Source of the DNA: Geosiphon pyriformis uo1
Lineage: Eukaryota > Fungi > Glomeromycota
DNA: 64,000 nt
Assembly: GCA_016748015.1 (NCBI GenBank)
Contig: JAAOMT010000630.1
Location: 345,585 to 409,584 of the forward strand
Direction: 5' to 3'
The notes under the pieces are model-generated. The model was not told the origin of the DNA and ran no database searches. It saw only the letters and a program-made list of their open reading frames with translations. This document shows positions 1 to 48,616 of the stretch, piece by piece. Position 1 is the first letter of the stretch, and each line of letters begins with the position of its first letter. Position numbers and translations under genes: made by a program.

Positions 1-324
1 CGAATACGAATGAACTTTTAGTATCTTTTAAAAATTTTATTATACTAAATATGCAAAAACATACTTCAAAATAATTTCAAAAACTTCGGGTGAAATGTTT
101 GGCTTTTTAAACACAAAAATTCCATCTTCTTTCTTTGCCCAATCAGCTGATAGAGCGGTGGAAAAGTAATGCGACCTCGCGCATAGTATAAGAGAATGAG
201 CTTTATATTCTTTAATGCTTGGTTCTTCACCAGCGTAAATAATTACATCATGTGCATCGTCTTGTTCCAGAATTTTCCCAATATCAACGAAAAACTTTTT
301 TTGAAAGTCGGAAATTTCAGACAT
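1..324 (-). CDS. BTB/POZ-BACK-TLDc protein B1, partial: exon 1 (324..65), intron donor at 64, rest beyond window start
   Basis: MSEISDFQKKFF...HDVIIYAGEEPSIKEYKAHSLILCARSHYF is a BTB N-terminus. The 260-bp exon ends AA|GTATGT, as in all seven other paralogues. Confidence 0.85.
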
Positions 325-820
325 ATTTAATGTCTTATTCTCGAGTTCTGTAGTAAAATTATAAGCTGGACAGTTTTTATGGCCAAACACCAATTATGAG
401 GCTGGGAAAACTATCATGCACTTTGAACAGTTTAAATTTAATTTTGCCTAATTAAAAATTTCAACCTGTTTTTTTTTATTTCCAGATGGAAGTGCAAAAG
501 TTAATATATGTATTAGCCATTATTAAAGTGATAAACCAGCTACTTCGGGATAATCTACATTTCAATTGGGGATTTGGGGAAGTGATTTTTATATATCCTA
601 TTTCATTATGTTTTTTTGCAGGTCTAAAACTTTAAAATTATGCCAAATTCTCAATGACTAATATAAAATATAAAGTTATAAGTTATATTAATAAAGTGGT
701 AGTATTTATGAATTTTTTGAGTAAATACAACAAGAAAACTGTATATCGTCTCTTGAGATTGGGTGAATAAACACTTTTAAGAGATAATTAGCCTTTAGAA
801 ATTCAATTTAAATATTAAAT
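325..820. repeat. Upstream region of B1, direct repeat of the B3 upstream region 9506..9965
   Basis: Shared collinear blocks, e.g. aattataagctgga, tgcactttgaNcagtttaaatt, tattagccat, ttttaagagat..ttagcc.ttagaaattcaa. Confidence 0.8.
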
Positions 821-2224
821 CCTGGTTTTTTTTAAGAAAAATGCTTTGTCTTAAAAGACAATAACTCACAGAAGATGTAGCAAAAACGAACCGTTCTCAA
901 GGCTTTATCCATTTTGAATGAATTTACTAATTTTTACATTAGACACAAAATTTTTTTTATTCTATGAAGTGAATACATTAAATTTTATACTGTAATTTAA
1001 CTCATCTCAAGGGCAAATACTTAACTATTTTATACAAAATATTTGCCAAAGTGAAAGACGCATAAAACAAATAATAATGGTGGTAACATTTTAACAATTT
1101 TGGACTGACTATTAAGGTTTAGCATTTTTATAAATAATATATTGACAAAATTTATTAGGCAATTTCCTAAATAATTGTTTAATTCAATTGGCTTTATCGA
1201 CTCGCTGAAATCAAAGATAAACTTTATGCAAGGAAGTTATATTAAACTTATTATTAAAGCTATCATTGATGAAAGAAGGGGATAGAGGTAACGAAGATAA
1301 TTTCCGATCTTAGAACTAGATTATGCATTTAGATTGTCAAGCGAAAAAATCCTAAACAAGCATTCTGGCTGTCTATGGCTATTAATAAAAAATTTGTTGT
1401 AGTACATGAGAAACATGAAATTGAAATTTTTATTGCTGCAAAACTTATAGCTAAAAATTATATACTGTTTCAGAAGTATTAATATTACAGTGGCGTCAAA
1501 ATATTAATTCAAGCTAACTCTGATTCAATAAGTTTATCTAACTTAAATCTTAAAATATTTTTGAACGATTTGATAAACTTAAGATGTTTATTTCTTTTAA
1601 CATCTAATTATCCTTTAGAATGTATTTTGAGTTGCACTTTTGCAAGCCTAAAATTGTGTAGTTCTGAGTATTCTATAGTTATGTTAATTAGTAGACATTC
1701 ATCTATCAATTAAGGCAAAACGGTTTGGAATTCAAAAATTTGATATAATCTTTAATATTCTGGAATGAAAATCAGGGCAATATTAATGTTTATAAAATAA
1801 TAGGATCTTTTCATTATAAAGCAGTTTCTAAATAATAATTAATTCATTTTATCAGCTCTCTGAAATCTGAGGTAAAATTTCTACAAGATAATATTGAACT
1901 TGTCATTATGATATTAAAAGAAGCGGCTAGACCATCTCTAACCTTAAACCTAATTTATTTAGAAAACTCTCAAGAAAGTTTATCAATGAGCCATTGAAAC
2001 CCGCAATTATCAATCAAACTTTAAATTAAAGATAGCAATGATACAATGATAACGATAAGCATAGTCAGCCTTTTTGCAGTCATTTGAGTTCCAAACAATG
2101 GAAATGAGGAGTAGGCATCTATTTTCAGATCTCTTCCTTTTCGGGAATGTGATTTAACATAAATTCTTATTTATTACCTGAAAATCTTAGCCTTTGGTGC
2201 TAAAAAAATATTATCTAAATACTA

Positions 2225-2300
2225 TATGTACAGGATATTGTCCTTAAATAGCTTCAAAATGTTTTCAGTTGAATTCAGGTTTGGCCAGCAAGTTGATAGT
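2225..2300 (-). mobile_element. Possible short Tc1/mariner transposase relic
   Basis: Minus-strand translation CWPNLNSTENILKLFKDNI resembles the SPDLNPIENIW..LKDNI motif and the relic at 23.3-23.9 kb. Confidence 0.3.
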
Positions 2301-2400
2301 CTTAATTTTATTTTCATTATATTTATTTTTCAAATTTTGTTTTAGTAAAATTTATTTGTGATTTTTATCAATTTTCTTAAGGCCAAACTTTTATTACTTT

Positions 2401-2865
2401 ACATTCTTGAATTCTTTATTTGTTAAGAATTCTCTTTTAGCTTTTAATTTTTTCTCAAAGTTAATTATTAAACATAAAACAGTATTAAAAAAAATATAAA
2501 GATAATATTTGTAAAAAACTTTACAAATATATAATCACAAAATCTTTGTTAAAAACTATTATTGATTAAAAAAATTATGACCAAAAAAACTATTGTTTAT
2601 TTTTATATTTATGCATTATTAATAAATTAAATATTATTAAATGCAATTAATTTTTTTTATTAACGATACAATCAATTATTAATTTAAAGTTTTTTAATAT
2701 TTTTTAAAATTGAAGTAATAATTAAAATTAATATATTTGTATATCAAATTTATTTTAGATAGTAAATTTCAAAGCATTTATATATTATTTTAATATCAAA
2801 ATATGTATATTTAAAAAAAATTACTTATTTGAATACTATTATTTTTGCTATTTTATTTGAATTTT
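2401..2865. repeat. Diverged inverted repeat of 49735..50192 (distal 3' flank of B2 versus B8)
   Basis: acattcttgaattctttatttgttaagaattctc and following blocks are reverse-complementary to 49735..50192, roughly 75-80% identical by eye. Confidence 0.75.
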
Positions 2866-3447
2866 TATTTTATGATTTATTAAATTTAAAAAAAAAATGG
2901 TTTTCGATATAAAATTAATAAAAAAATTACAAGATATATTATTTTAAATTTTGCTATTCATAAAGTATTAAAGTATTTTTATTTCAAATAGTTTTTTATG
3001 TTTAAAATATTTTTTTTACGTCAGTAAATTGTATTAGACAGCAGATTTATAACTTACTATTTGGGTTATAAAAGTTCTTTATAATTGTATTCATGTTGAA
3101 ATTTAAAATTATTTTATTATTTTATTTTTTAATCAATTTAATTGTATATTGTTAATATATCATGTTATATTTTAGCATTTATATTTTTTTCTAAAATTCA
3201 TTAGTATATATATTTTATTTTAAAAAATAGCAATTTATTTATTATTTTTTTAAGTTCCATGAAAATTTTTTAATCCATTTTTTTTATTTATTTTCATAAT
3301 ATATAATCTTTATAGTTTTTCTTGGGTTCGAGACTGTTCTTTATTCCTGATTTAGCTATTTTTCTGAAACTCAAGAAAAACAATTATTGAATTTATTAGT
3401 AAAATTATAACATAGACTAGTAATTTTTCTGGAGGAAAAAATCAAGT

Positions 3448-5251
3448 TTAATTCTTCGTTACAATTCGAAAAACTTCATATTCTTGCATCTGATAGCTAT
3501 TACCTTTACTTAAGGAAGAAAAAATATCTGGATAACTATACGCTGTAGATTGTTGCCAATACGTCCCATTTATATAGAAATCATGTCCACCACCAAAAGT
3601 TAGTCCATAACTAGAATAGTTATAAACAGCATGTTGGTAATAGGTGGTAATTCGACCAATCTGCCCTGATTGACTACTCGAATCCGAAAACTGAAAAATA
3701 AAAGTAGAAATCGAACTTTGGTAACCTGAATTACTGGTCCAGTTTAGAGGATTATAGGCGCCAACAATAATATTGTTTGATGAAAGCTTTACGATAGTGA
3801 ATGTAGGTCCTTTATTATCACATCTACTATGAAAAGTTCCATCATTAAATCCATCCCGACTGGCGCGAAACAAGTTTTCAAATTTGTAGGAATGCTTTTG
3901 CTCTGATATCAAGTTCGTTCCTGCTATCCAATTACCGATTACAGCTGCGATCTTCTCATCAATTATAGTGGACTTAATTGCAATTGCTGATCGAGCTTTC
4001 AAAGTAGATTGAATTGGTATACTCGAATTCAGATAATGCTCAATGATGTTGTCAAAAAGAGGCTCGGGGAATACCCGCTTATAAGAGAAAACCTTGTGCT
4101 GAAAATCAGATGATTTAATCTCTCCCCATCGGATTAGAGGTAGCAGTGGTTCTAAGGTAGCTGCTACTGCGATGAAGTCTTCTCGGGACCATTTAGAAAC
4201 CTCCTTTTTCAAAGATGTATGTTGTGCCGTACCCCAATCAATTAAATACTCCCAAATTTTTATTTCTTCAATGTCAAGGTCATCCCGTTTCAAGAGCATT
4301 AAAAGAATTGATCTGTCGATAGAGTGAAAACCCTTTGATTCAAAAATTAATTTCGGGTTTGCACAAATATCCTCGAGACAATAATCACGGATGCTGTGAC
4401 ACGCTTCATGNNNNNNNNNNNNNNNNNNNNAATCTCTCCCCATCGGATTAGAGGTAGCAGTGGTTCTAAGGTAGCTGCTACTGCGATGAAGTCTTCTCGG
4501 GACCATTTAGAAACCTCCTTTTTCAAAGATGTATGTTGTGCCGTACCCCAATCAATTAAATACTCCCAAATTTTTATTTCTTCAATGTCAAGGTCATCCC
4601 GTTTCAAGAGCATTAAAAGAATTGATCTGTCGATAGAGTGAAAACCCTTTGATTCAAAAATTAATTTCGGGTTTGCACAAATATCCTCGAGACAATAATC
4701 ACGGATGCTGTGACACGCTTCATGCCTGAAAACAATATCAAGCACTTGCACGGGATTTTGGTTTAACCATTCATGTTTCTCTTTGATCAAGTATTGTTGT
4801 ATATGAGCCGATAAATTATCCAATTCTAATTCATCAACTGCAATTAAAAGTTTCAAAATTTCTGGACCTTCCTGACTTTTTAGGTTAACAGTTGCGCTGT
4901 ATAAAAATCTATTTAGGTTTTGAAAAAGTTTTAACAAATGGTAAAGATGTTTTAAAAATATCCATCAATTACTAAATATTCAAAAGCATACTTCAAGATA
5001 ACTTCAAAAACTTTGGGTGAAATGTTCGGCTTTTTAAACACAAAAATTCCATCTTGTTTCTTTGCCCAATTAGCTGATAGAGCGATGCGAAAGTAACGAG
5101 ACCTCTCACATAGTATAAGAGAATGGGCCTTGTACTTTTTCACGTTTGGTTCTTGACCAACAAGAATAATTACATCATGTGCATTGTTTTTTTCCAGAAT
5201 TTTCCCAATATCAGCGCAAAATTCTTTTTGAAATTCGGAAATATCATACAT
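3448..5251 (-). CDS. BTB/POZ-BACK-TLDc protein B2 (exon 1 5251..4992, intron 4991..4909, exon 2 4908..3448; about 468 aa after collapsing the gap duplication)
   Basis: BTB (HDVIILVGQEPNVKKYKAHSLILC), BACK (LLKRDDLDIEEIKIWEYLIDWG) and TLDc (LFRASRDGF..FHSRCDNKGPT, VGAYNPLNW, FGGGHDF, EYEVF) motifs. A phase-2 GT-AG intron joins ILK to FLYSATV. Confidence 0.85.
4117..4724. other. Assembly artefact: 294-bp duplication (4117..4410 = 4431..4724) around a 20-N gap
   Basis: Both sides of the N run carry the same sequence. Merging them restores one open exon of normal paralogue length. Confidence 0.9.
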
Positions 5252-5257
5252 ATTATA

Positions 5258-6525
5258 CAGTCTGGTAAGAAAAAAATTCGAAAAATATGAACCTATTAAG
5301 ATTGCGTTTGATTTAACCATTTTTGGTAAGTTTTGTGAAGGTAAAAAGGGAAACAGAATATTAGGTAATTTGCTGAGCTCTAAAAACATTTTCTCACATA
5401 TTAACTAATAGTTTTTTTTAAAACTTGTCTTTGAAATGCCGACTTCAAAGCAAAAAATGCAATGGCACGTCGTATTACATTTTTGGAAGCAAGAAATATG
5501 AAAGGTGAAAGAAATACAGAATAAAACAAATATACTCCTTTCTACAATCTATAATATCCTCGAAAAACTCAAAAAAAAAGCATGCGAGTGGTAATGGTCG
5601 GCCAAGAAAAATTATGGGAAATTCTTTGAAAGTATTAGGGCAGATTATTCGTAGAGATTCCTCAGTTTCGTCTAGATATTTAGCAATAAAGTTGGCTGAG
5701 AAGGGAATAAATGGTTTTTATGTTACTATTCAAAACCATTTATCCAACCTTAATTATAAAAAAGTCTTCCTTGAGCAACTCCAATGCTGACCGAAGAGCA
5801 TAAGCAAAAATGTGTAGAATGGGCCAAAAAACACTTGAACGACGATTGAAAAAGAACAGTTTTTACTGACGAAACATCTTTTCAACTTTTTCAAAACACG
5901 GTAAAATGTTGGCATAAAGGTACTCGACCAATTCGTCCTATGCTTAAAGATCGAACAAAAATTCTCGCATGGGGGGAATTCTACGAAAAAGGAAAGACTA
6001 GTTTATTCTGTTTTTTTCAAATAATGAATGCTCAATTTTATATAGATATTCTTTGTAACCACTTACCTGAAATTAGAGCAATGCTGGGGGATAATTGGCA
6101 ATTCCAACAAGATAATGACCCCAAGCATACTAGCAAGCTTGCCAAAGAGTTTATTGCTGAGAATACAACTGATTTGTTAGGGTGGCCATCTAATAGTCCC
6201 GACTTAAACCCAATAGAAAACCTTTGGGCTATTGTTAAAAAGAATGTAGAAAAAAGAATGCCTCAAAATCGTAGTGAATTAGAGAGATTTATGGGGGAAG
6301 AGTGGCAAGATATTCCTGAATCTACCTTAATTGGTTTAGTAGGATCAATGAGGCGGCGTTGTGAAATGATAATTGAGACAAATGGTGAAAGAATTTCCTA
6401 TTAATTTTATTAAAAAAAATTATATGATATTTGACTTTCTAATAAAAGTTGTTTTATGTAATTTGGTACATTAGTTAAGACATAGTAATTATTTTTATAT
6501 TTCCAATTTTTTTCTTACCAGACTG
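5258..6525 (+). mobile_element. Tc1/mariner DNA transposon, 1268 bp, DD34E type
   Basis: Perfect 21-bp TIRs CAGTCTGGTAAGAAAAAAATT (5258..5278, 6505..6525). TA duplication at 5256-57 and 6526-27. The empty site is visible upstream of B3. Confidence 0.95.
5436..6404 (+). pseudogene. Tc1-like transposase with stops and frameshifts; only the DDE C-terminal half (5940..6404) is open
   Basis: GRPRK, VFTDETSF, FQQDNDPKH and WPSNSPDLNPIENLW motifs, with 34 residues between D2 and E. In-frame TGA stops occur in the N-terminal half. Confidence 0.9.
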
Positions 6526-6527
6526 TA

Positions 6528-7967
6528 TATATTATTCCCGAGCTCTGTAGGAAAAATTATAAGCTGGATAGATTTTATAGCCAAAAACCAATAATGAGGC
6601 GTTACTTTTTTCGAATTGGATTTTATAAGTTAAATGTGACAATTGGCTTCGCTGTTTTGTATTTTTATTCAGCACAAATTGGTATTAGTTATTATTGGAG
6701 GGAATAAAAGCAAACCAATTAGCAACTTTGAGAATTTGCATTGTGCTGATTTCTAAGACTTGAATAAGATTTATCCAACGAGATATTTGATCATCTGCTT
6801 ATTTTACCGAGATTTCAGGTTTAATTTCTAACCTATTCAAGAGATAAAAATACCACCCGCGTAAAGTAAAATTTCATTGTTATTGTTCACTTTTAAGGTA
6901 AAACAATGACAATTGAAAATCGCGCAAAATCTTTTGCTAACCTATTCACACAATTTTTTCAAATCAAAAGATTTCAGTGATCTTTTTATAATAAACGCAA
7001 ATAAAAAAATCACAGAAATTTTGGATCTTATCAGAAATGGCAGCTGNNNNNNNNNNNNNNNNNNNNNNNNNNNNNNNNNNNNNNNNNNNNNNNNNNNNNN
7101 NNNNNNNNNNNNNNNNNNNNNNNTTAAACAAAAAAGTAATTATATTCTAGAATGCTTTTATAACCAAGTCAGCAATTTTTTTTAGATTTCAAAAAGTTTA
7201 AGCTTTGCAATTATCAAAATTAATATTTAAATAAAATTATATTTAATAAAAAACTCTTAAATATTAATACTGCTACAAGTGTTAAAGTTTGGATTATTTG
7301 GTTTTGAAATACAAAATGCTTTTTTTAGCTATTAAAATCTGCTGTAAAGTTATTTGTTATGTTTAAAGTTTTTGTAAATCAGTTTGTTAATTAGTTTTTT
7401 ATGTCAAAACTATTGTTTTATTTCAAGTGTTTTATTTTGTAGACTCTAAAAATAGGTTTAAATCTGTAATTAAATCTATTGGTTTTTAGTTATTTTTTTA
7501 CTGGCTGTTAAAAATATATTTATAACAAGCTTAAATTCTTGGCATTTATCGTTGGGAACTCAGGATAGAGTTTTTTTAAGTTGGTTATTAATATATATTA
7601 AAATAAGTATGAAGCATGTTTATTAAATAGCAATAAAATAATTAATGCTATTGATTTTTTATTAAGTGAATATGTATTTAGTAATCTAATAATTCTTTAA
7701 GGTTATTAAAAAAGCTATAAAAATCAGGGATAGCGAATTCATTTAAGATAGTAGTTAAATAATTATTGTGGCTGGTCACGTGTTGTTTGTAGCCTGATCC
7801 ACATCTAATATACAATAGTTGGTGGTTGGACTACACTTGTTTGGCAATAATAAAAAATAAATATAAATATAATAAAATTAAAATTTTATTATGTTAATTA
7901 TTATTTATAATTTTTGTTCAACTTTATTAGAATGTATTTTAGAAAATACTTCCATATAATAAATTTA
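6528..7967. repeat. Inverted repeat arm matching 45552..47135 (spacer upstream of B2 and of B8)
   Basis: 7560..7967 is nearly identical to the reverse complement of 45552..45959. 6601..7046 matches 46497..46960 with a few substitutions and indels. Both N gaps start at the same homologous base. Confidence 0.9.
7124..7880 (+). mobile_element. Probable 3' end relic of a non-LTR retroelement with an A-rich tail
   Basis: T-rich decayed coding-like sequence of the same character as 58.5-60.4 kb. It ends in ggtggttggactacacttgtttggcaataataaaaaat, a motif that recurs at 11516 and 11599. Confidence 0.4.
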
Positions 7968-8027
7968 GAGCAAAGAAATAATCATGTTAGATACCACTCT
8001 TAAAAGGGAAAAAATCAAGTTAAATGG

Positions 8028-9505
8028 TTATAAAACTTTAAAAACTTCATAGTCTTGCATTTGTAGGCTACTATTTCCAAGGCTTGAAAAAATGTTGGGA
8101 TAGGTGTGTACTGAACTGTGGTACCAATAATTTCCACTTATATAAAAATCATGTCCACCACCAAAAGTTGGTCCATAACTAGAATAGTTATAAACAGCAT
8201 ATTGGTAATTGGTGGTAATTCGACCAATCTGCCCTGATTGACTACTCGAATCCGAAAACTGAAAAATAAAAGTAGAATTCGAATTTTGGTAAGTTCCATT
8301 ACTGTTCCAGTTTAGAGGATTATAACCGCCAACAATAATATTGTTTGATGAAAGCTTTACGATAGTGAATGTAGGTCCTTTATTATCACATCTACTATGA
8401 AAATTTCCACTATCAAATCCATCCCGACTGGCGCGAAACAAGTTTTCAAATTTGTAGGAATGCTTTTGCTCTGATATCGAGTTCGTTCCTGCTATCCAAT
8501 TACCGATTACTCTTGCGATCTTCTCATCAATTATAGTGGAGTCAATTTGAGCTCGTAATCGAGGTTTCAAAGTAGATTGAATTGGTATACTCGAATTCAG
8601 ATAATGCTCAATGATGTTGTCAAAAAGAGGCTCGGAGAATACCCGCTTATAAGAGAAAACCTTGTGCTGAAAATCAGATGACTTAATCTCTTCCCATCGG
8701 ATTAGAGGTAGCAGTGGTTCTAAGGTAGCTGCTACTGCGATGAAGTCTTCTCGGGACCATTTAGAAACCTCCTTTTTCAAAGATGTGTGTTGTGCCGTAC
8801 CCCAATCAATTAAATACTCCCAAATTTTTATTTCTTCAATGTCAAGGTCATCCCGTTTCAAGAGCATCAAAAGAATTGATCTGTCGATAGAGTGAAAACC
8901 CTTTGATTCAAAAATTAATTTCGGGTTTGCACAAATATCCTCGAGACAATAATCACGGATGCTGTGACACGCTTCATGTCTGAAAACAATATCAAGCACT
9001 TGCACGGGATTTTGGTTTAACCATTCACGTTTCTCTTTGATCAAGTGTTGTTGTATATGAGCTGATAAATTATCCAATTCTAATTCATCAACTGCAACCA
9101 AAAGTTTCAAAATTTCTGGAGCTTCCTGACTTTTCAGGTCAACCGTTGCGCTGTATAAAAATCTATTTAGGTTTTGAAAAAGTTTTAACAAATGGTAACG
9201 ATGTTTTAAAAATATTAATTAAATGCTAAATATTCGAAAGCATACTTCAAGATAACGTCAAAAACTTTGGGTGAAATGTTCGGCTTTTTAAACACAAAAA
9301 TTCCATCTTGTTTCTTTGCCCAATTAGCTGATAGACCGGTGCGAAAGTAACGCGACCTCGCACATAGTATAAGAGAATGGGCTTTATATTCTTTAATGTT
9401 TGGTTTTTCACCGGCGCAAATAATTACATCATGTGCATTGTTTTGTTCCAGAATTTTCCCAATATCAGCGCAAAATTCTTTTTGAAATTCGGAAACATCA
9501 GACAT
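8028..9505 (-). CDS. BTB/POZ-BACK-TLDc protein B3 (exons 9505..9246 and 9162..8028; 464 aa)
   Basis: Same motifs as B2. 83-bp GT-AG intron at 9245..9163. The spliced frame is open. Confidence 0.92.
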
Positions 9506-12128: not shown

Positions 12129-14258
12129 TCATGAAACGTTTTGATTACCAAGATCTGAATTGAAATGACAAGGAGTAGCACGCCAATTAAACACTTTTGG
12201 TCCCGACTTTATTCGACTTTGCTCAAGAATATATGTCCAAGTAATCGGACCACCATTATACCCTTCAGACCCTTTACTACCTAATCGATTCAGCCTAAAA
12301 GGTTTCCCGGTTTTTGGAGTTTCTTCTTCGGCATCAAAGTTTTTATTCACTTGGTGATTAGGGACTTGAGGTTGATACGATGCTACTTCATTTGATCCTA
12401 TCACACCATCTTGCTTCGTTGGTGATCCGTTATCTTCTTCTTCAGATGAGAAAATATCGTCATCTATTTCGGTGAGATCACTTGTTTCGTAATTGGAATC
12501 AGAAAAGAGGTAGTCACGTCGCTTATCGACGGCAGTTTGGCGTATTAAAGGCGCGATTGCTTTCCTCATCATATAAAAGTTAGATTTCTTCTCATTTGAC
12601 AGTTTCATGCTGTCCTCTTGTTTATCTGAATTCTGCGAAGGATATTCTTCATTAACGGTTTTAGAGGCCTTCTGGTCTTTACCTTTTCTACGTGCTTCAC
12701 GTAATCTTTTTCTCTCTCTATGGACCCATTTTCTAACAGCCTTTAGGGAATTCGGATGTTTTGGAAGACGTTCTCTCCTTGTCATATCACAAAACAAATA
12801 TTTTGAAAATGGCATCGGTTTCTTTCCTAACTTTAAAATCTCGTGGTATACAACTGTATTTGTACATTCAGGGTCCTTTAAACGTAGCTCATAATAATAC
12901 ATAAGCTCATCAATAAACTTCAATTCCTCTTCACTTAGAGGAGAGCAATTTCGTAATCTAGCCGGTTGGGTCCAAGTTGAATAATCAGTATACTTTATTT
13001 CAGGTTCCGGGTCAGATGATGATGATGACAAATCTGATGATGAATCCGAAGATGAGGATGTGGACGGCTGTTTAAACCTTTTCGATGGCGGTGGCGATGA
13101 TTCATCTGTAAAGCCTTTGATGCGGGCGTATTCTGAAAATGGCGGAGTTGATGGTGTTAAGAGTGATCGAGGTGGTTTGTATCCATTATCAGTAGAGCAT
13201 TTCAATCGTAGTTTCGATTTAGTAGCTTGATTGGCCTTTCGACGACGTTTGGATGATACATCCCATTCTTCAATGGCGCTTTCATCACTCGACATCCAAT
13301 CAGTATAAACAGGGACTTTTCCAACCGCAACGCGTCGGAGTCGTTTAGACCAGTTACTATCGACTGAGGGTGACATACGATCAATTGATCCTGATTCAGA
13401 TAAATATTCCTCACTTGAATTTCCATCTGATTCATCGTTTGGGTATTGATCTTCAATCTCCTTCGATGATGGACTAAAATAACTAAAAGTGTGAAAGCTA
13501 CTTGAATAGTATAACTCTGAGCTGTGATCGTAATTTAATGCTTTTCTGGACTTAAAGTCAGAAATTTTATTATTGCCAACCACACTGGGAGTTTTAGTTG
13601 GGGAAGATGGGTTTTCATTTAATTCATTTTCCGATCCATTTTGAGTTTTATTCGGATTATGAATGCCTTGCTGAAAGAGACCCAAAGCTTCAGTTGCCAA
13701 AAGGGTTAAAGAATCTTGAGTGGAAAGATCTTGATAGCTCACAGTGACCTCTTTTACCGCTAACTCGTCCTCTTTTTCTTCTGAAGGCCGATATTGTTTT
13801 GGACCCTCGGAAGCGGCAAATTGAGAAAACGGGACATCTTTTTCTTGGAAAGTAACAGTCCGACTTTCGGAAACCGAAGGCGTGATAGTGGAAGGTTGGG
13901 AAAGCTTAAAATAAGCTTCTGCATATTCTTTGGTTGATTTATTAGAAGCTTCTATCGAGGATAATGGTTCAATATTGATAGGGGAAATCAAGCTATCCAC
14001 AGCCATGATCTTGTCCCCATTTGATTTGTTCGAGGTTGGAAGCTGATTAGATTCTTTTTTTGGTACTTGTTGCTTGGGTTGTCGGTTGTATATTCGAAGA
14101 TCGATTCGATTATGTAGTTTGAAATCGCCCTTATACCGAGGAGGTGTTAGCGAAGTAATGACGCTATTTGGTCGGCCAGAAGTTGAGTCGTGATCCAAAT
14201 GTTGATAATTTGATGAAATCGTTTCAGACGATGACCCTGAAGAGTTGTGAGAGTCCAT
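12129..14258 (-). CDS. Hypothetical Ser/acidic-rich, largely disordered protein (709 aa); possible extra 5' exon 14501..14448 spliced to 14315
   Basis: 2.1-kb open frame in a GC-elevated island, with basic clusters (KRRRK, HRERKRLREARRK) and no domain I recognise. The candidate exon MDVSSSSSSKSEKPPKSA|GTATGT joins in frame at an AAG acceptor. Confidence 0.75.
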   Translation of the reverse strand: MDSHNSSGSSSETISSNYQHLDHDSTSGRPNSVITSLTPPRYKGDFKLHNRIDLRIYNRQPKQQVPKKESNQLPTSNKSNGDKIMAVDSLISPINIEPLSSIEASNKSTKEYAEAYFKLSQPSTITPSVSESRTVTFQEKDVPFSQFAASEGPKQYRPSEEKEDELAVKEVTVSYQDLSTQDSLTLLATEALGLFQQGIHNPNKTQNGSENELNENPSSPTKTPSVVGNNKISDFKSRKALNYDHSSELYYSSSFHTFSYFSPSSKEIEDQYPNDESDGNSSEEYLSESGSIDRMSPSVDSNWSKRLRRVAVGKVPVYTDWMSSDESAIEEWDVSSKRRRKANQATKSKLRLKCSTDNGYKPPRSLLTPSTPPFSEYARIKGFTDESSPPPSKRFKQPSTSSSSDSSSDLSSSSSDPEPEIKYTDYSTWTQPARLRNCSPLSEEELKFIDELMYYYELRLKDPECTNTVVYHEILKLGKKPMPFSKYLFCDMTRRERLPKHPNSLKAVRKWVHRERKRLREARRKGKDQKASKTVNEEYPSQNSDKQEDSMKLSNEKKSNFYMMRKAIAPLIRQTAVDKRRDYLFSDSNYETSDLTEIDDDIFSSEEEDNGSPTKQDGVIGSNEVASYQPQVPNHQVNKNFDAEEETPKTGKPFRLNRLGSKGSEGYNGGPITWTYILEQSRIKSGPKVFNWRATPCHFNSDLGNQNVS

Positions 14259-16985: not shown

Positions 16986-18464
16986 ATGACCGAGGTTTCT
17001 AACTTTCAAATAAAGCTATGCGCTGATATTGGAAAAATTCTGGAGCAAAATAATGTACACGATGTAATTATTCTTGTCGGTCAAGAACCAAACGTGAAAA
17101 AGTACAAGGCCCATTCTCTTATACTATGTGCGAGGTCGCGTTACTTTCGCATCGGTCTATCAGCTGATTGGGCAAAGAAACAAGATGGAATTTTTGTGTT
17201 TAAAAAGCCTAACATATTACCCGAAGTTTTTGAAATTATTTTAAAGTATGCTTTCGAATATTTAGTAATTGATGGTTATTTTTAAATGTCTTTACCATTT
17301 GTTAAACTTTTTCAAAACCTAAATAGATTTTTATACAGCGCAACTGTTGACCTGAAAGGTCAGGAAGGTTCAGAAATTTTGAAACTTTTGGTTGCAGTTG
17401 ATGAATTAGACTTGGATGATTTATCGGCTCATATACAACAACACTTGATCAAAGAGAAACGTGAATGGTTACACCAAGATCCCGTGCAAGTGCTTGATAT
17501 TGTTTTCAGGCATGAAGCGTGTCACAGCCTCCGTGATTATTGTCTCGAGGCTATTTGTGCAAGCCCGAAATTAATTTTTGAATCAAAGGGTTTTCGCTCT
17601 ATCGACAGATCAATTCTTTTAACGCTCGTGAAACGGGATGACCTTGAAATTGAAGAAATAAAAATTTGGGAGTATTTAATTGATTGGGGTACGGCACAAC
17701 ACACATCTTTAGGAAAGGAGGTTTCTAAATGGTCTCGAGAAGATTTCACTACAGTAGCAGCTACCTTAGAGCCGCTGCTCCCTCTAATCCGATGGGGAGA
17801 GATTAAGTCATTAGATTTTCAGCAAAAAGTTTTGCCTTATAAGCGAGTCCTACCCAAGCCTCTTTACAAAAGCATCATCGAGCATTATCTGAACTCGAGT
17901 ATACCAATTCAATCTACTTTGAAGGCTCGAGCCGCAATTCACATTGACTCCACCATAATTAATAAGAAGATTGCAGCTGTAATCGGTAATTGGATAGCAG
18001 GAACGAACTCGATATCAGAGCAAAACCATTCCTACAAATTTGAAAACTTGTTTCGCGCCAGTCGGGATGGATTTAATAATGGAACTTTTCATAGTAGATG
18101 TAATAACAAAGGACCTACAGTTACTATTGTGAAGCTTTTATCATACAATATTATTGTTGGCGCTTATAATCCTCTACACTGGACCAGTAATGGAACTTAT
18201 CAATATTCGGATTCTACTTTTATTTTTCAGTTTTCGGATTCAACGAGTCAATCAGGACAGATTGGTCGAATTAACAACTCTTACCAAAATACTGTTTATA
18301 ACCAATCTAATTATGGGCCAACTTTTGGTAGTGGAAATGATTTCTTTATAAATGGGACGTATTGGCGTCATTCTACAGGGAATAGTTATCCAAATATTTT
18401 TCCTTCCTTTAGTACAGGTAATAACTATCAGATGCAAGAATATGAAGTTTTTAGAGTTTTATAA
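16986..18464 (+). CDS. BTB/POZ-BACK-TLDc protein B4 (exons 16986..17245 and 17327..18464; 465 aa)
   Basis: BTB, BACK and TLDc motifs. 81-bp intron GTATGC...AATAG. The spliced frame is open. Confidence 0.92.
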
Positions 18465-29830: not shown

Positions 29831-31306
29831 TTATAAAACTCTAAAAACTTCATATTCTTGCATCTGATAGTTATTACCTGCACTAAAGGAAGGAAAAATA
29901 TTTGGATAACAATTCCCTGCAGAATGACGCCAATACGTCCGATTTATATGGAAATCATATCCACCACCAAAAGTTGGTCCATAACTAGGATTATTATAAA
30001 CAGCATTTTGGTAGGTGGTAACTCGACCAATCTTCCCTGATTGACTACTCGAATCCGAAAACTGAAAAATAAAAGTAGAATCCGAATTTTGGTAAGTTCC
30101 ATTACTGATCCAGTGTAGAGGATTATAAGCGCCAACAATAATATTGTATGATAAAAGCTTCACAATAGTAACTGTAGGTCCTTTGCTATCACATCTACTA
30201 TGAAAAGTTCTATCATTAAATCCATCCCGATTGGCGCGAAACAAGTTTTCAAATTTGTAAGAATGCTTTTGCTCTGATATCGAGTTCGTTCCTGCTATCC
30301 AATTACGATTACAGCTGCAATCTTCTTATTAATTATGGTGGAGTCAATTTGAGTTGCGGATCGAGCCTTCAAAGTAGATTGAATTGGTATACTCGAATTC
30401 AGATAATGCTCGATGATGCTTTTGTAAAGAGGCTTGGGTAGGACTCGCTTATAAGGCAAAACTTTTTGCTGAAAATTTAAAGACTTAATCTCTCCCCATC
30501 GGATTAGAGGGAGCAGCGGCTCTAAGGTAGCTGCTACTGTAGTGAAATCTTCTCGAGACCATTTAGAAACCTCCTTTCCTAAAGATGTGTGTTGTGCCGT
30601 ACCCCAATCAATTAAATACTCCCAAATTTTTATTTCTTCAATGTCAAGGTCATCCCGTTTCACGAGCATTAAAAGAATTGATCTGTCGATAGAGCGAAAA
30701 CCCTTTGATTCAAAAATTAATTTCGGGTTTGCACAAATAGCCTCGAGACAATAATCACGGAGGCTGTGACACGCTTCATGGCGGAAAACAATATCAAGCA
30801 CTTGCACGGGATCCTGGTGTAACCATTCACGTTTCTCTTTGATCAAGTATTGTTGTATATGAGCCGATAAATCATCCAATTCTAATTCATCAACTGCAAC
30901 CAAAAGTTTCAAAATTTCTGAACCTTCCTGACCTTTCAGGTCAACAGTTGCGCTGTATAAAAATCTATTAAGATTTTGAAAAAGTTTTAAAAAATGGTAA
31001 AGACATTTAAAAATAACCATCAATTACTAAATATTCGAAAGCATACTTTAAAATAATTTCAAAAACTTCGGGTAACATGTTTGGCTTTTTAAACATAAAA
31101 ATTCCATCTTTTTTCTTTGCCCAATCAGCTGATAGACCGATGCGAAAGTAACGCGACCTCGCACATAGTATAAGAGAATGGGCCTTGTACTTTTTCACGT
31201 TTGGTTCTTGACCGACAAGAATAATTACATCGTGTACATTATTTTGTTCCAGAATTTTTCCGATATCAGCGCATAGCTTTATTTGAAAGTTAGAAATCTC
31301 AGTCAT
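29831..31306 (-). pseudogene. BTB-BACK-TLDc copy B6 with a single 1-bp deletion at about 30306 (exons 31306..31047 and 30964..; 309-aa product lacking TLDc)
   Basis: + strand reads ccaattacgatt where the other copies have ccaattaccgatt. Frames on both sides of the deletion are otherwise open. Confidence 0.8.
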
Positions 31307-37060: not shown

Positions 37061-39362
37061 CTAATCTTTTTTACCTAATTCCCATAATCCTTCTCTCTCT
37101 CTTTTGTAACTATCAAATTCTTCATCACTCTTTCCAACACTGTTTTTCTCATCACCATCAATATTCCTATTATAATTATGATCACTGTTTTTATCATCCT
37201 CATTATCATCATTATCATCATTATCGTCATCTTCATTATCAAAATATATCCGAGCACGTTGCATCGCCTCGAAATATCTAATCGGTAAATGGTTTCTAAA
37301 AAAAGTAGGTAACACTCGTTCAATCCAGATTAAAGGACTCCCAACAGGATGTTTGTAATTCGGTTCAGTACGAAAAACGTCTTTTCTACTGAACCACGGT
37401 TTACCATTTCGACAAAATTTTGATTCGGTTTCACTGTCAGCCACTTTCCCTTCACTATCTAAAGAATTCCATCCAAACATCGAATATAATGAATAATTTC
37501 TTCTTTTTCGTTGTACAACGACCGGCTCAATTGCATTATCAAAAGAATCCCAAGTTGATACAGGTTTCCTACCATCCCGGAAAAACCTCATTCCTTCACC
37601 AACATGTGCATAATTTAAAAGATTCATCTTGTTGATGAAACGTCTGATGCTAGGATCTTCATAGCCTGGTGGTAATTTCGTGATAATATCTGTATCATTT
37701 ATTACTCGCCATAACATATTCGGCCTATCGAAAGGATCATTTGCAGCAGCTGCAAAATGTGCCGCAAAATCTGCATCACCGATAGCTGGAGTACCAAATA
37801 GATATCCATCTCGTAAAATACAATTCTCATCAAGATCTGAAGGTGACTGAAGGAGGCGAGAGTAGAATAGAGTTCCTAGAGCAGCACCTAGTGAATGTCC
37901 TGTCACCCAAAGATTTATCGGTTGAGAATGTTCATTACTTGATGATGATGATGACAATTTTGATAATGAGCGAATTTGTAAAGCTTTAGCACGAACTGCT
38001 CTTATGATTGTTATGTATGGACTTGTTGCATGGCCTCTTGAACTTTTGTGACCTGCATCTGGAAAGAGGGACGTATAGAATCCTTCATGAATTTCCCCAA
38101 ACACGAATCCTCTTTAAGAGTGAAACATTATGAGAGTAGTGAATTGTTTCATAGATATTATAAGCAATATTATTAATAAAAAAAACTATAGATTTTTATT
38201 TTAAACGTTTTGCATTTCAAAAAAATAAAAAAGTACCTCGCATCAACACGTTGAATCATCAAATCCACCAAAAAATCTTCAAAGTTAGTCGGCGTCGTTC
38301 CTTTAAATACAACCACAATGAATCGATGTGCATATGACCAAAACATTCCAGCGAAGGGTCCACCCAAAGAGTTTAATTCCGATAACGAAGTAAATTCTAA
38401 TCCCCACTGATCGGCTTGCTTGTGTATGCGAGCTTCACTTTCTCTCAATTGTCGATTCACCTCCTCGAAAGCTTCTGGAGTTCGTTTTACTTTATTTTTA
38501 GAGAGAGATGTAATCATTTTATGAGCATTACGAACCATCGTATCATCACGTTCATATACAATCGCTGACATGAGAAGTAGAGTTTCGGCGATATCGAGAT
38601 TAAAGGGTCGAGTTTTCTTTTGGGTGCTTGTATCAGATTTTGCGGCCTCGTGTTGGTAAGCTGTTGTGGAGGGCAGGGGTTGGTCTAACCCTAGAATACC
38701 ATCATTTACTATGTCACGAACTTCTTCCGAGAATATTCTTGGATCCCCTGGACATTATGAAATATAATGAATTTGAGTGTTTGTAATTTGATTGAGGGAA
38801 TTATTAATTCGTTGAAATTATTCGATTGTAATCGAAATCGCTAAAATCTACTAGCTAATTCAAATGAATAAAAACACGCTTCGTATCTGTACTCACACCA
38901 ATTAACAGGAGTCAAACCATCACCCCATTTTTCTGAAACTCTGTTCAACACGTTTCCAAATCCACATAAAAAAGCCATATGTAATGATAACTCAATAATC
39001 ACCAAAGAAACTACAATAGCGGGAAACACGGTAATGGTCAACATAAAATTCACTGGATGAAAAATTGGCATTGACCAATCAAATAATACTGTTAATAATA
39101 AATTTCGTATAGCACGATGAACATAAACTACATAAGTTAACGAAGGAAAAAGTGTGGGAAGAGAAGTGAATGATTGGGTAGCTGTTGATTTATGTTCTGG
39201 TGTTTGTGTTAAATCTTTTAGATGAGGACTGGCATCTTTATAATGCTTTACGTGGCCATTTAGAAGTGGAATTGATGTTTCACGATGGGGCTGAGAGGTT
39301 GAAGGTTGAGGTGGATTTGGCCTTTTGGGATTTTGATTTTGATTTGATTTTTGAGCCGACAT
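37061..39362 (-). CDS. Class 3 lipase (alpha/beta hydrolase) with an N-terminal hydrophobic region; exons 39362..38897, 38747..38237, 38111..37061; 675 aa
   Basis: IVVVFKGTTP, GEIHEGFY, nucleophile elbow VTGHSLG, YLFGTPAIGD, RVINDTDIITKLP and RNHLP. Two GT-AG introns join in frame (PVNW-WDPRIF; VDAR-GFVFG). Acidic D/N tail. Confidence 0.9.
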
Positions 39363-41929: not shown

Positions 41930-42400
41930 TTCCGTGATTTTTTATTCGCGTTTATTATAAAATAATCAAAAGATTTTGCGCGTTTTTTTCTTACACTTTT
42001 ATTACAAAAGATCATAATGTCATATTTTTAGTTAAAACATATTATTTTAATATAAACAATTTCAATTGTCTTTGTTTTACCTTAAAAGTGAACCATAACA
42101 ATGAAATTTTTCTTTTTACACGAGTGGTATTTTTTATCTCTTGAATAGATTAGAAATTAAACCAGCAATCTCGATAAAATAAAGAGATGATCAAAAAATT
42201 CTTGTTGAATAAATCTTATACGAGTCTTAAAAATCAGCGCAGCACAAATTCTCAAAGTTGCTAATTGTTTTGCTTTTGTTCCCTTTAATAATAACTAATA
42301 CCAATTTGCGCTGCATCCATACCTTTTATACCTCATAAATAATAGCAAAACAACGAAGCCAATTGTCTAATTTAAATTATAAAATGCAATTCGAAAATAA
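41930..42400. repeat. Third copy of the ~450-bp upstream module (also 46497..46960 direct and 6601..7046 inverted)
   Basis: Shared ttgttttaccttaaaagtgaa, gtggtatttttatctcttgaatag, caaattctcaaagttgctaattg, ataactaataccaatttgcgctgca. Confidence 0.85.
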
Positions 42401-42522
42401 TGAAGTGAATCCCTATTTATACTCTGTAACATCACCTCAAAGTCTTGACTTGTCTTTAAAGTTAAAATCATCCAAGCTTATATTAGTATTTTTCTAAAGA
42501 ACTCGAGAAAAAGATTGTTAAT

Positions 42523-43987
42523 ATGTCCGACATTTCTAACTTTCAAATAAAATTTTGTGCAGATATTGGAAAACTTCTAGAGCAAAACAATACACATGAT
42601 GTAATTATTCATGCCGGTAAAGAACCAAACATGAAAAAATATAAGGCCCATTCTCTTATACTATGCGCAAGATCGCGTTACTTTCGTATCGGTTTATCAG
42701 CTGATTGGGCAAAGAAGAAAGACGAAATCTTTGTGTTTAAAAAGCCAAACATTTTACCAGAAGTGTTTGAAAATATTATAAAGTATGTTTTGAATTTAAG
42801 AAATATTTTGAAAACATTCTGAAATTTTCATTAACATTTTTCAAAACTCGAATAGATTTTTATACAGCGCAACTATTGACTTGAAAGGTCAGGAAGGTCC
42901 AGAAATTTTGAAACTTTTGGTTGCAGTTGATGAATTAGAATTGGATGATTTATCGGCTCATATACAACAATACTTGATCAAAGAGAAACATGAATGGCTA
43001 CACCAAGATCCTATGCAAGTGCTGGATATTGTTTTTCGGCATGAAGCGTGTCACAGCCTCCGTGATTATTGTCTCGAGGCTATTTGTGCGAACCCGAAAG
43101 TAGTTTTCGAATCAAAGGATTTTTACTTTATTGATAGATCAATTCTTCTAATGCTGTTGAAACGAGACGACCTTGACATTGAAGAAATAAAAATTTTGGA
43201 GTATTTATTTAATTGGGGTACGATGCAACACACATCTTTAGGAAAGGAGGTTTCTATCTGGTGTGGAGAAGATTTCACGGCAGTAGCAGCTACTTTAGAA
43301 CCACTGCTACTTCTAATTCGATGGGAAGAGATCAAGTCATCTGATTTTCAGCAAAAGGTGTTGCCTTATAAGCGGGTCCTACCCAAACCTCTTTACAAAA
43401 GCATTATCGACCATTATCTGAATCCGAGTATACCAATTCAATCTACTTTGAAGGCTCGAGCCGCAACTCGAATTGACTCCACTATAATTAATAAGAAGAT
43501 TGCAGCTGTAATCGGTAATTGGATAGCAGGAACGAACTCGATATCAGAGCAAAAGCATTCTTACAATTTTGAAAACTTGTTTCGCGCCAGTCGGGATGGA
43601 TTTAATGATAGAACTTTTCATAGTAGATGTGATAACAAAGGACCTACAGTTACTATTGTGAAGCTTTTATTAAACAATATTATTGTTGGCGCCTATAATC
43701 CTCTACACTGGACCAGTAATGGAACTTATCAAAATTCGAATTCTACTTTTATTTTTCAGTTTTCGGATTCGAGTAGTCAATCAGGGAAGATTGGTCGAGT
43801 TATCACCTACCAAAATGCTGTTTATAATAATCCTAGTTATGGACCAACTTTTGGTGGTGGACATGATTTCTATATAAATGGGAATTATTGGTGCCACAGT
43901 TCAGTACATTCCTATCCCAATATTTTTTCAAGCCTTAGAGGTAATAACCTACAAATGCAAGACTATGAAGTTTTTAAAGTTTTATAA
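42523..43987 (+). CDS. BTB/POZ-BACK-TLDc protein B7 (exons 42523..42782 and 42856..43987; 463 aa)
   Basis: Family motifs present. 73-bp GT-AG intron. The spliced frame is open. Confidence 0.9.
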
Positions 43988-45551: not shown

Positions 45552-47135
45552 TAAATTTATTATATGAAAGTATATTCTAAAATACATTCTAATAAAGTTG
45601 AACAAAAATTATAAATAATAATTAACATAATAAAATTTTAATTTTATTATATTTATATTTATTTTTTATTATTGCCAAACAAGTGTAGTCCAACCACCAA
45701 CTATTGTATATTAGATGTGGATCAGGCTACAAACAACACGTGACCAGCCACAATAATTATTTAACTACTATCTTAAATGAATTCGCTATCCCTGATTTTT
45801 ATAGCTTTTTTAATAACCTTAAAGAATTATTAGATTACTAAATACATATTCACTTAATAAAAAATCAATAGCATTAATTATTTTATTGCTATTTAATAAA
45901 CATGCTTCATACTTATTTTAATATATATTAATAACCAACTTAAAAAAACTCTATCCTGANNNNNNNNNNNNNNNNNNNNNNNNNNNNNNNNNNNNNNNNN
46001 NNNNNNNNNNNNNNNNNNNNNNNNNNNNNNNNNNNNNNNNNNNNNNNNNNNNNNNNNNNNNNNNNNNNNNNNNNNNNNNNNNNNNNNNNNNNNNNNNNNN
46101 NNNNNNNNNNNNNNNNNNNNNNNNNNNNNNNNNNNNNNNNNNNNNNNNNNNNNNNNNNNNNNNNNNNNNNNNNNNNNNNNNNNNNNNNNNNNNNNNNNNN
46201 NNNNNNNNNNNNNNNNNNNNNNNNNNNNNNNNNNNNNNNNNNNNNNNNNNNNNNNNNNNNNNNNNNNNNNNNNNNNNNNNNNNNNNNNNNNNNNNNNNNN
46301 NNNNNNNNNNNNNNNNNNNNNNNNNNNNNNNNNNNNNNNNNNNNNNNNNNNNNNNNNNNNNNNNNNNNNNNNNNNNNNNNNNNNNNNNNNNNNNNNNNNN
46401 NNNNNNNNNNNNNNNNNNNNNNNNNNNNNNNNNNNNNNNNNNNNNNNNNNNNNNNNNNNNNNNNNNNNNNNNNNNNNNNNNNNNNNNNNNNNNNNNCAGC
46501 TGCCATTTCTGATAAGATCCAAAATTTCTGTGATTTTTTTATTTGCGTTTATTATAAAAAGATCACTGAAATCTTTTGATTTGAAAAAATTGCGTGAATA
46601 GGTGAGCGAAAGATTTTGCGCGATTTTCAATTGTCATTGTTTTACCTTAAAAGTGAACAATAACAATGAAATTTTTCTTTACGCGGGTGGTATTTTTATC
46701 TCTTGAATAGGTTAGAAATTAAACCTGAAATCTCGGTAAAATAAGCAGATGATCAAATATCTCGTTGGATAAACCTTATTCAAGTCTTAGAAATCAGCAC
46801 AATGCAAATTCTCAAAGTTGCTAATTGGTTTGCTTTTATTCCCTCCAATAATAACTAATACCAATTTGCGCTGCAATGCATACCTTTTATACCTTAATAA
46901 AAATAGCAAAACAGCGAAGCCAATTGTCACATTTAATAAAATCCAATTCGAAAAAAGTAACGTTTGCGCTTCCATTTGAAAATAAAAAAAAAGATTGAAG
47001 TTTTTAATTAGGGCGAACTTAAATTTAAACTGTTTAAAGTGCATAATATTTCTCCCAGCCTATTATTGGTTTTTGGCTATAAAAACTATCTAGCTCATAA
47101 TTTTTTGTACAGAACCTAGGAATAAGAAATTTGAT
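45552..47135. repeat. Inverted repeat arm matching 6528..7967; contains a 537-N gap
   Basis: Reverse-complement match on both sides of the gap. Gap length is close to the homologous 513-bp span 7047..7559. Confidence 0.9.
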
Positions 47136-48616
47136 ATGTCTGATATTTCCGAATTTCAAAAAGAATTTTGCGCTGATATTGGGGAAATTCTTGAACAAAA
47201 TAATACACATGATGTAATTATCTACGTCGGTGAAGAGCCAAGCATTAAAGAATATAAAGCCCATTCTATTATATTATGTGCGAGGTCGCATTACTTTCTC
47301 ACCGCTCTATCAGCTGATTGGGCAAAGAAAGAAGATGGAATCTTTGTGTTTAAAAAGCCGAACATTTTACCCAAAGTTTTTGAAGTTATCTTGAAGTATG
47401 CTTTCGAATATTTAGTATTTAATTAATATTTTTAAAACATCGTTACCATTTGTTAAAACTTTTTCAAAACCTAAATAGATTTTTATACAGCGCAACTGTT
47501 GACCTGAAAAGTCAGGAAGCTCCAGAAATTTTGAAACTTTTAATTGCAGTTGATGAATTAGAATTGGATAATTTATCGGCTCATATACAACAATACTTGA
47601 TCAAAGAGAAACATGAATGGTTAAACCAAAATTTCGTGCAAGCGCTTGATATTGTTTTCAGGCATGAAGCGTGTCACAGCCTCCGTGATTATTGTCTCGA
47701 GGCTATTTGCGCAAACCCGAAATTAATTTTTGAATCAAAGAGTTTTCACTCTATCGACAGATCTATTCTTTTAATGCTCTTGAAACGGGATGACCTTGAC
47801 ATTGAAGAAATAAAAATTTGGGAGTATTTAATTGATTGGGGTACGGCACAACACACATCCTTGAAAAAGGAGGTTTCTAAATGGTCCCGAGAAGACTTCA
47901 TCGCAGTAGCAGCTACCTTAGAACCACTGCTACCTCTAATCCGATGGGGAGAGATTGAGTCATCTGATTTTCAGCACAAGGGTTTCTCTTATAAGCGGGT
48001 ATTCCCCGAGCCTCTTTTTGACAACATCATTGAGCATTATCTGAATTCGAGTATACCAATTCAATCTACTTTGAAACCTCGATTACCAGCTCAAATTGAC
48101 TCCACTATAATTGATAAGAAGATCGCAAGAGTAATCGGTAATTGGATAGCAGGAACGAACTCGATATCAGAGCAAAAGCATTCCTACAAATTTGAAAACT
48201 TGTTTCGCGCCAGTCGGGATGGATTTGATAGTGGAAATTTTCATAGTAGATGTGATAACAAAGGACCTACATTCACTATCGTAAAGCTTTCATCAAACAA
48301 TATTATTGTTGGCGGTTATAATCCTCTAAACTGGACCAGTAATATAGGTTATGAATATTCGAATTCTAATTTTATTTTTCAGTTTTCGGATTCGAGTAGT
48401 CAATCAGGGCTGATTGGTCGAATTAAGGCCTATAACCAAAATGCTGTTTATAACCATCCTAGTTATGGACCAACTTTTGGTGGTGGAAATGATTTCCTTA
48501 TAAATGGGACGTATTGGCGTCATTCTGCAGAGAATAGTTATCCAAATATTTTTCCTTCCTTTAGTGTAGGTTTTAACCATCAGATGCAAGAATATGAAGT
48601 TTTTAGAGTTTTATAA
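47136..48616 (+). CDS. BTB/POZ-BACK-TLDc protein B8 (exons 47136..47395 and 47479..48616; 465 aa)
   Basis: Family motifs present. 83-bp GT-AG intron. The spliced frame is open. Confidence 0.92.

Follow-up and report, generated by a model that had tools for sequence, protein, structure and literature searches.

A cluster of genes encoding BTB-BACK-TLDc proteins was analysed in a 64,000-nt stretch of the genome of the fungus Geosiphon pyriformis uo1 (NCBI GenBank assembly GCA_016748015.1, contig JAAOMT010000630.1, positions 345,585 to 409,584 of the forward strand), hereafter the window; the contig that carries it is referred to as C716, and the window thus corresponds to C716:345585-409584. 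Using the two exons of one copy as query, tblastn detected eight loci in the window, and the BTB (PF00651), BACK (PF07707), and TLDc (PF07534) domains were found by Pfam and tblastn searches where a first-pass annotation, made from the sequence alone, had placed them. The gene structure comprises two exons, separated by a single phase-2 intron of 73-83 nt (GTATG...[A/C]TAG) after codon 86, and encodes a product of ~464 amino acids. Exon 1 carries BTB, exon 2 carries BACK and TLDc, and each domain scores over its curated cut-off (PF00651, 36 bits against 20.5; PF07707, 26.5 against 20.9; PF07534, 76.9 against 24.5). The "eight-gene array" of the first-pass annotation held with respect to the eight loci, but only five of them (B2, B3, B4, B7, and B8) are intact, and the array runs beyond the window, with at least two more copies (B0 and Bx) 18-22 kb away to the left. 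The copies occur in both tandem and inverted orientation, and together they form a young array that evolves by birth and death, with at least 10 BTB-BACK-TLDc genes, eight of them in the window. Its features are as follows, in window coordinates unless C716 is indicated.

C716:323318-324868, left of the window: B0, frameshifted by +1 within an A run and lacking its stop codon
C716:326755-327253, left of the window: Bx, exon 1 alone, interrupted by a gap at the point in the intron where B1 also breaks off
65-324, minus strand: B1, exon 1 (BTB) alone, followed by 64 nt of intron and then an N run
3448-5251, minus strand: B2, exon 1 4992-5251, intron 4909-4991, exon 2 3448-4908; 468 codons open once an internal overlap is collapsed
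6547-6600, minus strand: relic of 54 nt from the 5′ part of a BTB exon, adjoining a Tc1/mariner DDE_3 fragment
7047-7123: gap in the B2-B3 spacer, no gene copy broken
8028-9505, minus strand: B3, exon 1 9246-9505, 83-nt intron 9163-9245, exon 2 8028-9162; intact, 464 codons
8031-8543, minus strand: TLDc domain of B3, codons 294-464
8292-8306 (loop 1), 8178-8222 (loop 2), and 8076-8147 (loops 3-4), minus strand: selected hypervariable loops of B3
16986-18464, plus strand: B4, exon 1 16986-17245, exon 2 17327-18464; intact, 465 codons
25298-26318, plus strand: B5, pseudogene with ~115 BACK codons deleted, further deletions, and in-frame stops
29831-31306, minus strand: B6, exon 1 31047-31306, exon 2 29831-30964
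42523-43987, plus strand: B7, exon 1 42523-42782, exon 2 42856-43987; intact, 463 codons
45960-46496: gap in the B7-B8 spacer, 640 nt before the B8 start codon, no gene copy broken
47136-48616, plus strand: B8, exon 1 47136-47395, exon 2 47479-48616; intact, 465 codons

Among the ~10 clustered copies, B5, B6, B0, and one relic are damaged, and five copies keep open frames of 463-468 codons at a synonymous divergence (dS) of 0.1-0.5. In B6, a 1-nt deletion near position 30305 ends the protein before TLDc (the GenBank model is 309 amino acids long); B6 is probably a young pseudogene, a sequencing error being the alternative. The B0-spacer-Bx segment left of the window is an inverted duplicate of the segment B3-spacer-relic, indicating that the array grew by segmental duplication, and B1 and its inverted copy Bx share 98.6% identity over 499 nt.

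Comparison of the copies demonstrated that they are mosaics generated by recombination or gene conversion. The splits defined by informative sites shift along the gene, with {B2,B3,B8} grouped in exon 1, {B0,B2,B3,B8} grouped at codons 215-370, and {B0,B3,B7} separated from {B2,B4,B6,B8} at codons 426-463. An exhaustive search over all 945 topologies shortened the parsimony length from 471 steps to 432, 414, and 407 steps when one, two, and three breakpoints were allowed, respectively. Between B3 and B8, dS was 0.03-0.08 from BACK through the N-terminal part of TLDc, with 0.03 in the TLDc portion, but 0.46 in the last 65 codons, a contrast indicating that old, diverged C-terminal cassettes sit on recently homogenised scaffolds.

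The variable motifs quoted in the first-pass annotation, namely the residue after DF and the segment after GRI/V, were found as it described them, and its pairwise counts were reproduced exactly: over the last 48 codons, B4 (18318-18464) and B8 (48470-48616) differ at 9 nt in 7 codons, and B4 and B6 at 8 nt in 7 codons, with 0 synonymous changes in either pair. A lone pairwise count of 0 synonymous changes over 48 codons is not significant (roughly 0.78^9), and significance comes only from tree-based tests. The description of BTB and BACK as highly conserved proved overstated: among seven copies, amino-acid-variable codons amounted to 51/125 in BTB, 29/110 in BACK, and 68/172 in TLDc, the difference between BTB and TLDc being not significant. 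The variable residues of BTB are older and under purifying selection (dN/dS ratio, omega, of ~0.3). Sites carrying at least three different residues were found at 23/172 TLDc codons vs. 16/293 elsewhere (p=0.005), and at 16/65 of the last 65 codons (p=1.5e-5), while the ratio of amino-acid-variable to synonymous-only sites was 68:15 in TLDc and 102:62 elsewhere (p=0.0014). Pooled pN/pS values calculated by the NG86 method were 0.32 for BTB, 0.35 for BACK, 0.52 for the linker, and 0.81 for TLDc, and in the B2/B4/B6/B8 group omega reached 2.1-4.75 over the last 65 codons. The core TLDc residues are invariant.

Selection was assayed using a self-written GY94-F3x4 codon-likelihood program on a local alignment of seven usable sequences, divided into four recombination partitions each with its own tree; in the site models, branch lengths were fixed up to a scale factor. 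The exons were joined solely for these codon alignments, and profile and fold searches used single exons or the database proteins P0001 and P0006. The one-ratio model (M0) gave omega 0.52 overall and 0.36, 0.53, 1.74, and 0.79 in the four partitions. For the whole gene, twice the log-likelihood difference (2dlnL) was 7.1 for M1a-M2a (p=0.03), 9.3 for M7-M8 (p=0.01), and 7.7 for M8a-M8 (p=0.006). Positive selection was not detected in the BTB-BACK-linker part of the array (2dlnL 1.7, p=0.42), whereas the TLDc part gave a 2dlnL of 12.4 (p=0.002), with ~20% of its codons at omega ~3.9. In a parametric bootstrap under M1a, the maximum of 26 replicates was 6.9, and 0/26 reached 12.4. In the array, these results place positive selection in a class of TLDc codons, concentrated in three or four loops between strands, and the scaffold under purifying selection.

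A second subfamily of the same genome, consisting of 12 dispersed paralogues on other contigs (L014-L030) that are 66-94% identical to one another and ~34% to the array, also showed a conserved BACK/linker region and visibly hypervariable TLDc loops, its segment omegas being 0.29, 0.38, 0.43, and 0.91. The 2dlnL values were 54 for M1a-M2a, 69 for M7-M8, and 50 for M8a-M8, and 11 of the 13 sites with P>0.8 fell in TLDc. Tested alone, TLDc gave p=1e-12, with 9% of sites at omega 4.5, and BACK gave p=0.03, with 1% of sites. Profile alignment placed the selected positions of this subfamily in the same loops as those of the array, and in a third pair (L018/L025) the variation was again found in loop 1. 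The replication in the second subfamily is the strongest evidence for selection on the TLDc loops. Diversifying selection on these loops is thus moderately supported in the array and strongly supported in the sister subfamily. The first-pass annotation had proposed such selection, and its proposal is borne out by dN/dS above 1 at a class of TLDc codons after recombination partitioning, with BTB-BACK negative, and by the repetition of this result in an independent subfamily.

An AlphaFold2 (AF2) model of the annotated B3 protein (P0001), built from a 68-sequence alignment, had a predicted local distance difference test score (pLDDT) of 89.7. Foldseek searches with its N-terminal part returned cryo-electron microscopy (cryo-EM) chains of Cul3-bound KBTBD2 as the top hits and matched KLHL11 BTB-BACK crystals, free and Cul3-bound, with a template modelling (TM) score of 0.71; the modelled BTB-BACK part folds like a Cullin-3 substrate adaptor. 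For the C-terminal part, matches were obtained to the TLDc domains of NCOA7, OXR2, and TBC1D24 (Skywalker) at TM 0.7-0.83, with TM 0.79-0.83 to 4ACJ and 7OBP, and also to those of Oxr1p and mEAK7. DSSP assigned the selected sites to inter-strand loops. The best sequence match of TLDc in the PDB was human mEAK7 (E=0.09), and the alignment, anchored on the GG..W, F.F, and G..GGG motifs, placed loop 1 at mEAK7 P316/Q317, loop 2 (two residues before 'YGP'/'GP') at Q353/T354, the 'GR' site and its variable neighbours at Y341-H344, and 'DF' with the variable residue after it at Y367/F368. In mEAK7, P316, Q317, and T354 contact residues 553-559 of V-ATPase subunit A, and Y341 and Y367 contact residues 29-40 of subunit E1 (PMC9263379); Q353 and F368 are neighbours of contact residues. 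In the Geosiphon domain, the positions aligned to P316/Q317, T354, Y341, and Y367 are variable or lie next to variable sites. The RDGF motif, which aligns with the G276/H277 contact of mEAK7, is conserved. From the DSSP assignment and this alignment, which place the selected sites in loops corresponding to the partner-binding face of mEAK7, we infer that the diversifying loops form one TLDc face, the one used by mEAK7 for partner binding, in line with the variable binding surface envisaged in the first-pass annotation.

Four cullin genes were identified in the genome, and the one on contig C445 is the Cul3 orthologue, since its N-terminal exon matched human Cullin-3 at E=8e-43 vs. 3e-17 for Cul4. 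The N-terminal open reading frame (ORF) of Geosiphon Cul3 contains an in-frame intron, and a complex was predicted between the Cul3 N-terminal domain of another species (P0121:1-385, 65% identical) and the B6 BTB-BACK region (P0006:1-290). The interface score ipSAE was 0.46 compared with 0.00 for the best control, contacts were at least 89% consistent between runs, and the partner had a pLDDT of at least 83. The prediction is rated as weak support for the binding of BTB-BACK to Cul3, which the first-pass annotation had assumed; complexes of this kind have already been solved, and the score is not used here as evidence for binding.

Contigs assembled from one public RNA run matched B3 at 7981-8808 and at 8954-9162 joined to 9246-9363 with 0 mismatches, skipping 9163-9245, which is bounded by GT..AG on the minus strand. 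Therefore, B3 is transcribed and spliced, and at least one copy of the array is expressed with a correct junction. This junction (...ILK/FLYSATV...) restores the family-wide 'YIY.G'-type BTB motif. The ORFs of the window are 99% identical to the annotated proteins G9A89_019565 to 019577. In the models G9A89_019571, G9A89_019576, and G9A89_019577, of B3, B7, and B8, respectively, the acceptor was set 12 nt too far downstream (...ILN/ATV...), so that the GenBank models lack four BTB residues; the RNA contigs and the family conservation both back ...ILK/FLYSATV....

Scanning the 128-Mb, 792-contig, AT-rich assembly yielded at least 108 scored BTB-BACK-TLDc loci out of 309 candidates, and homologues of the same architecture were found in Ambispora, Paraglomus, Rhizophagus, Glomus, Diversispora, Gigaspora, Funneliformis, and Acaulospora. 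The family to which the array belongs as one subfamily numbers more than 100 members in this genome and occurs throughout Glomeromycota; in database annotation, the three-domain architecture is mostly assigned to Mucoromycota, with one cluster labelled Cnidaria. A distant relative, 35% identical to B3, lies on the same contig at C716:439772-440818, ~30 kb right of the window. Across 68 family members drawn from many Glomeromycota, mean entropy was about equal over all domains, and TLDc alternates between an invariant core and variable, indel-bearing loops (P0001 residues 369-376, 399-412, and 423-436).

That BTB expansion in this group is not new, as the first-pass annotation had remarked, agrees with the consulted portions of PMC8647823 and PMC9453076, which report BTB/POZ expansion and tandem arrays in arbuscular mycorrhizal (AM) fungi and propose a role in environmental perception. 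Expansion of the TLD domain to ~400 copies in Glomeromycotina, interpreted as protection against reactive oxygen species (ROS), is reported in the part consulted of PMC10079182, and links of the expanded BTB/TLD families to transposons were already described in the passages seen of these papers. In those passages the BTB and TLD domains are tallied separately; by our analysis, both expansions largely reflect a single family of fused genes, which includes this locus. The literature searched held no description of the BTB-BACK-TLDc fusion, of mosaic recombination, or of selection on TLDc loops.

We consider it fairly probable that the locus is a recombining array of likely Cul3 adaptors, whose selected TLDc loops serve as a variable target-recognition module. 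The BTB-BACK scaffold would dimerise through BTB and dock on Cul3, and TLDc, sitting where Kelch or MATH domains sit, would use its V-ATPase-type face as a variable substrate-binding surface. Different copies would thereby present different targets for ubiquitination, and recombination would join long-diverged C-terminal cassettes to homogenised scaffolds in new combinations. As a mechanism, adaptor function for Cul3 is plausible though unproven, and an immune-like role is speculation.

Several observations weigh against this explanation. No site of the local array reaches a posterior of 0.95, just seven local sequences are usable, two of which (B0 and B6) are probably pseudogenes, and the whole-partition omega of the last segment is 0.79, not above 1; moreover, residual recombination within partitions or multi-nucleotide mutations can inflate self-implemented codon tests. 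The assignment of the loops to one face depends on the weak, motif-anchored mEAK7 alignment (E=0.09). The predicted complex was built with the Cul3 of a different species, and its score may stem from solved BTB-Cul3 complexes that the model had learned. The phi-x-E motif for contact with Cul3 could not be recognised, since phmmer searches against PDB sequences gave marginal BCL6-type matches (E ~1e-3) from which it could not be placed. Finally, two old paralogues (L010/L011, at C537:235857-237032 and C488:90012-91175; dS 0.7-1.1) are uniformly purifying, with omega 0.10, TLDc included. Diversification thus stands for the array and the second subfamily but does not extend to every member, and is a property of young, expanding subfamilies; the family also holds conserved members, which may have a fixed partner.

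The pattern could alternatively reflect relaxed constraint in a decaying, redundant array, where tolerant TLDc loops vary and gene conversion mixes the copies without adaptive diversification. Such decay agrees with three to four dead or damaged copies among ~10 (B5, B6, B0, and the relic), with a whole-domain TLDc omega of ~0.9 and local posteriors none of which exceeds 0.95, and with the variability and indel richness of the same loops family-wide, as weak constraint predicts. However, drift cannot give an omega above 1, and M2a and M8 outperformed M1a, M7, and M8a in TLDc and not in BTB-BACK, at p=0.002 for TLDc locally and 1e-12 in the second subfamily; five frames have stayed open at dS 0.1-0.5, the TLDc core is invariant, and B3 is expressed. 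We regard relaxed constraint as rather unlikely. Errors of assembly or consensus, or collapsed and mis-joined repeats mimicking hypervariability, could be suspected from the several gaps, the one demonstrable mis-join in B2, and the cutting of B1 and Bx at the same intron position, but RNA contigs match B3 over ~1.1 kb with 0 mismatches, the differences keep the reading frame and cluster in loops, and the same pattern recurs in 12 dispersed loci, so that an artefact is highly improbable.

A functional alternative is that these proteins are canonical TLDc regulators of the V-ATPase or oxidative-stress proteins, in which BTB-BACK only oligomerises and the loops tune the grip on one conserved partner. 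All characterised TLDc proteins bind V-ATPase (PMC9263379), the TLD expansion has been read as ROS protection in the part consulted of PMC10079182, and the RDGF motif at the mEAK7 G276/H277 contact is conserved. Yet hundreds of paralogues with selected, length-variable loops at mEAK7 contact positions are hard to fit to a single partner, and the BTB-BACK fold resembles that of Cul3 adaptors, not of plain oligomerisation BTBs; such a role therefore appears distinctly unlikely to us.

Compared with known systems, the putative adaptors share with the Kelch (KLHL/KBTBD) and MATH (SPOP-type) Cul3 adaptors an N-terminal BTB(-BACK) fold like that of Cul3-bound KLHL11 and KBTBD2, a separate putative target-binding domain, and lineage-specific arrays with pseudogenes. 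They differ in that TLDc takes the Kelch/MATH position, a combination not known among characterised Cul3 adaptors, in the marginal similarity of their BTB to solved BTBs (E ~1e-3), and in that Cul3 binding is here predicted only. The MATH-BTB expansions of nematodes and grasses evolve rapidly (PMC4091423), and in MATH-BTB and F-box families positive selection likewise acts on the target-binding domain alone, the scaffold being kept under purifying selection; these adaptively evolving adaptor families would be the closest functional analogy. With OXR1, NCOA7, TBC1D24, and mEAK7 (and yeast Oxr1p and Rtc5p), the Geosiphon domain shares the TLD profile, fold, and conserved core motifs, whereas OXR1, NCOA7, TBC1D24, and mEAK7 are single-copy conserved V-ATPase binders and the Geosiphon domain occurs in more than 100 copies as a fusion to BTB-BACK. 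With respect to mEAK7 in particular, the positions aligned to its V-ATPase contacts are the positively selected ones here.

AM fungi and their relatives carry hundreds of BTB and TLD genes, and in the literature searched, including consulted portions only of the genome papers, ROS protection was the sole published reading of the TLD expansion found. With the selected loops at the positions by which other TLDc proteins grip the V-ATPase, the question becomes what these variable receptors recognise. If the recombining adaptor array is as we propose, it would be the first case in which TLDc serves as a variable module for recognition and a further example of adaptive evolution in ubiquitin-ligase adaptors. 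A more far-reaching version, which we hold unlikely, is a germline-encoded, recombining repertoire in which the V-ATPase face has been turned into a 'paratope' and Cul3 ligases tag non-self or fast-evolving proteins for degradation; candidate targets may be proteins of endobacteria, the Nostoc symbiont, mycoviruses, transposons, or incompatible nuclei or hyphae. Such a repertoire would amount to immunity or allorecognition in a fungus, built on a domain type new to such systems.

With respect to the assembly, the 20-N gap at 4411-4430 within B2 is flanked by the identical sequences 4117-4410 and 4431-4724 (294/294 nt, 0 mismatches). Since these flanks are identical and end exactly at the gap, the gap represents an unmerged contig overlap, 4411-4724 being an artefact, and a real tandem duplication at this point was rejected for the 100% identity of the overlap and its end exactly at the gap. 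The sequences flanking the gap at 7047-7123 recur in the same order in the homologous spacer near B0, ~600 nt apart. The remainder of B1 falls in a run of 3881 N, which ends immediately left of the window. N runs cut B1 (window 1-64) and Bx (C716:327209-327253) at the same base, ~45-65 nt into the intron, and the intron sequence of both is unlike the introns of the other copies, which points to a repeat or an insertion at this site that blocked the assembly. Overall, the array is real and partly decayed, and the assembly is imperfect yet interpretable.

Between B2 and the relic, a transposase fragment of Tc1/mariner type (DDE_3, PF13358, E=4e-12) lies at 5940-6404 on the plus strand, and its insertion probably destroyed a further BTB copy, leaving the relic at 6547-6600. 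Between B3 and B4, a serine- and charge-rich ORF of 709 amino acids (12129-14258, minus strand), without a Pfam match, sits where the GC content of the window peaks (~40%). Pieces of class-3 lipase genes (PF01764) were found on the minus strand at 37061-38571, between B6 and B7, and at 54003-54419, right of the array.

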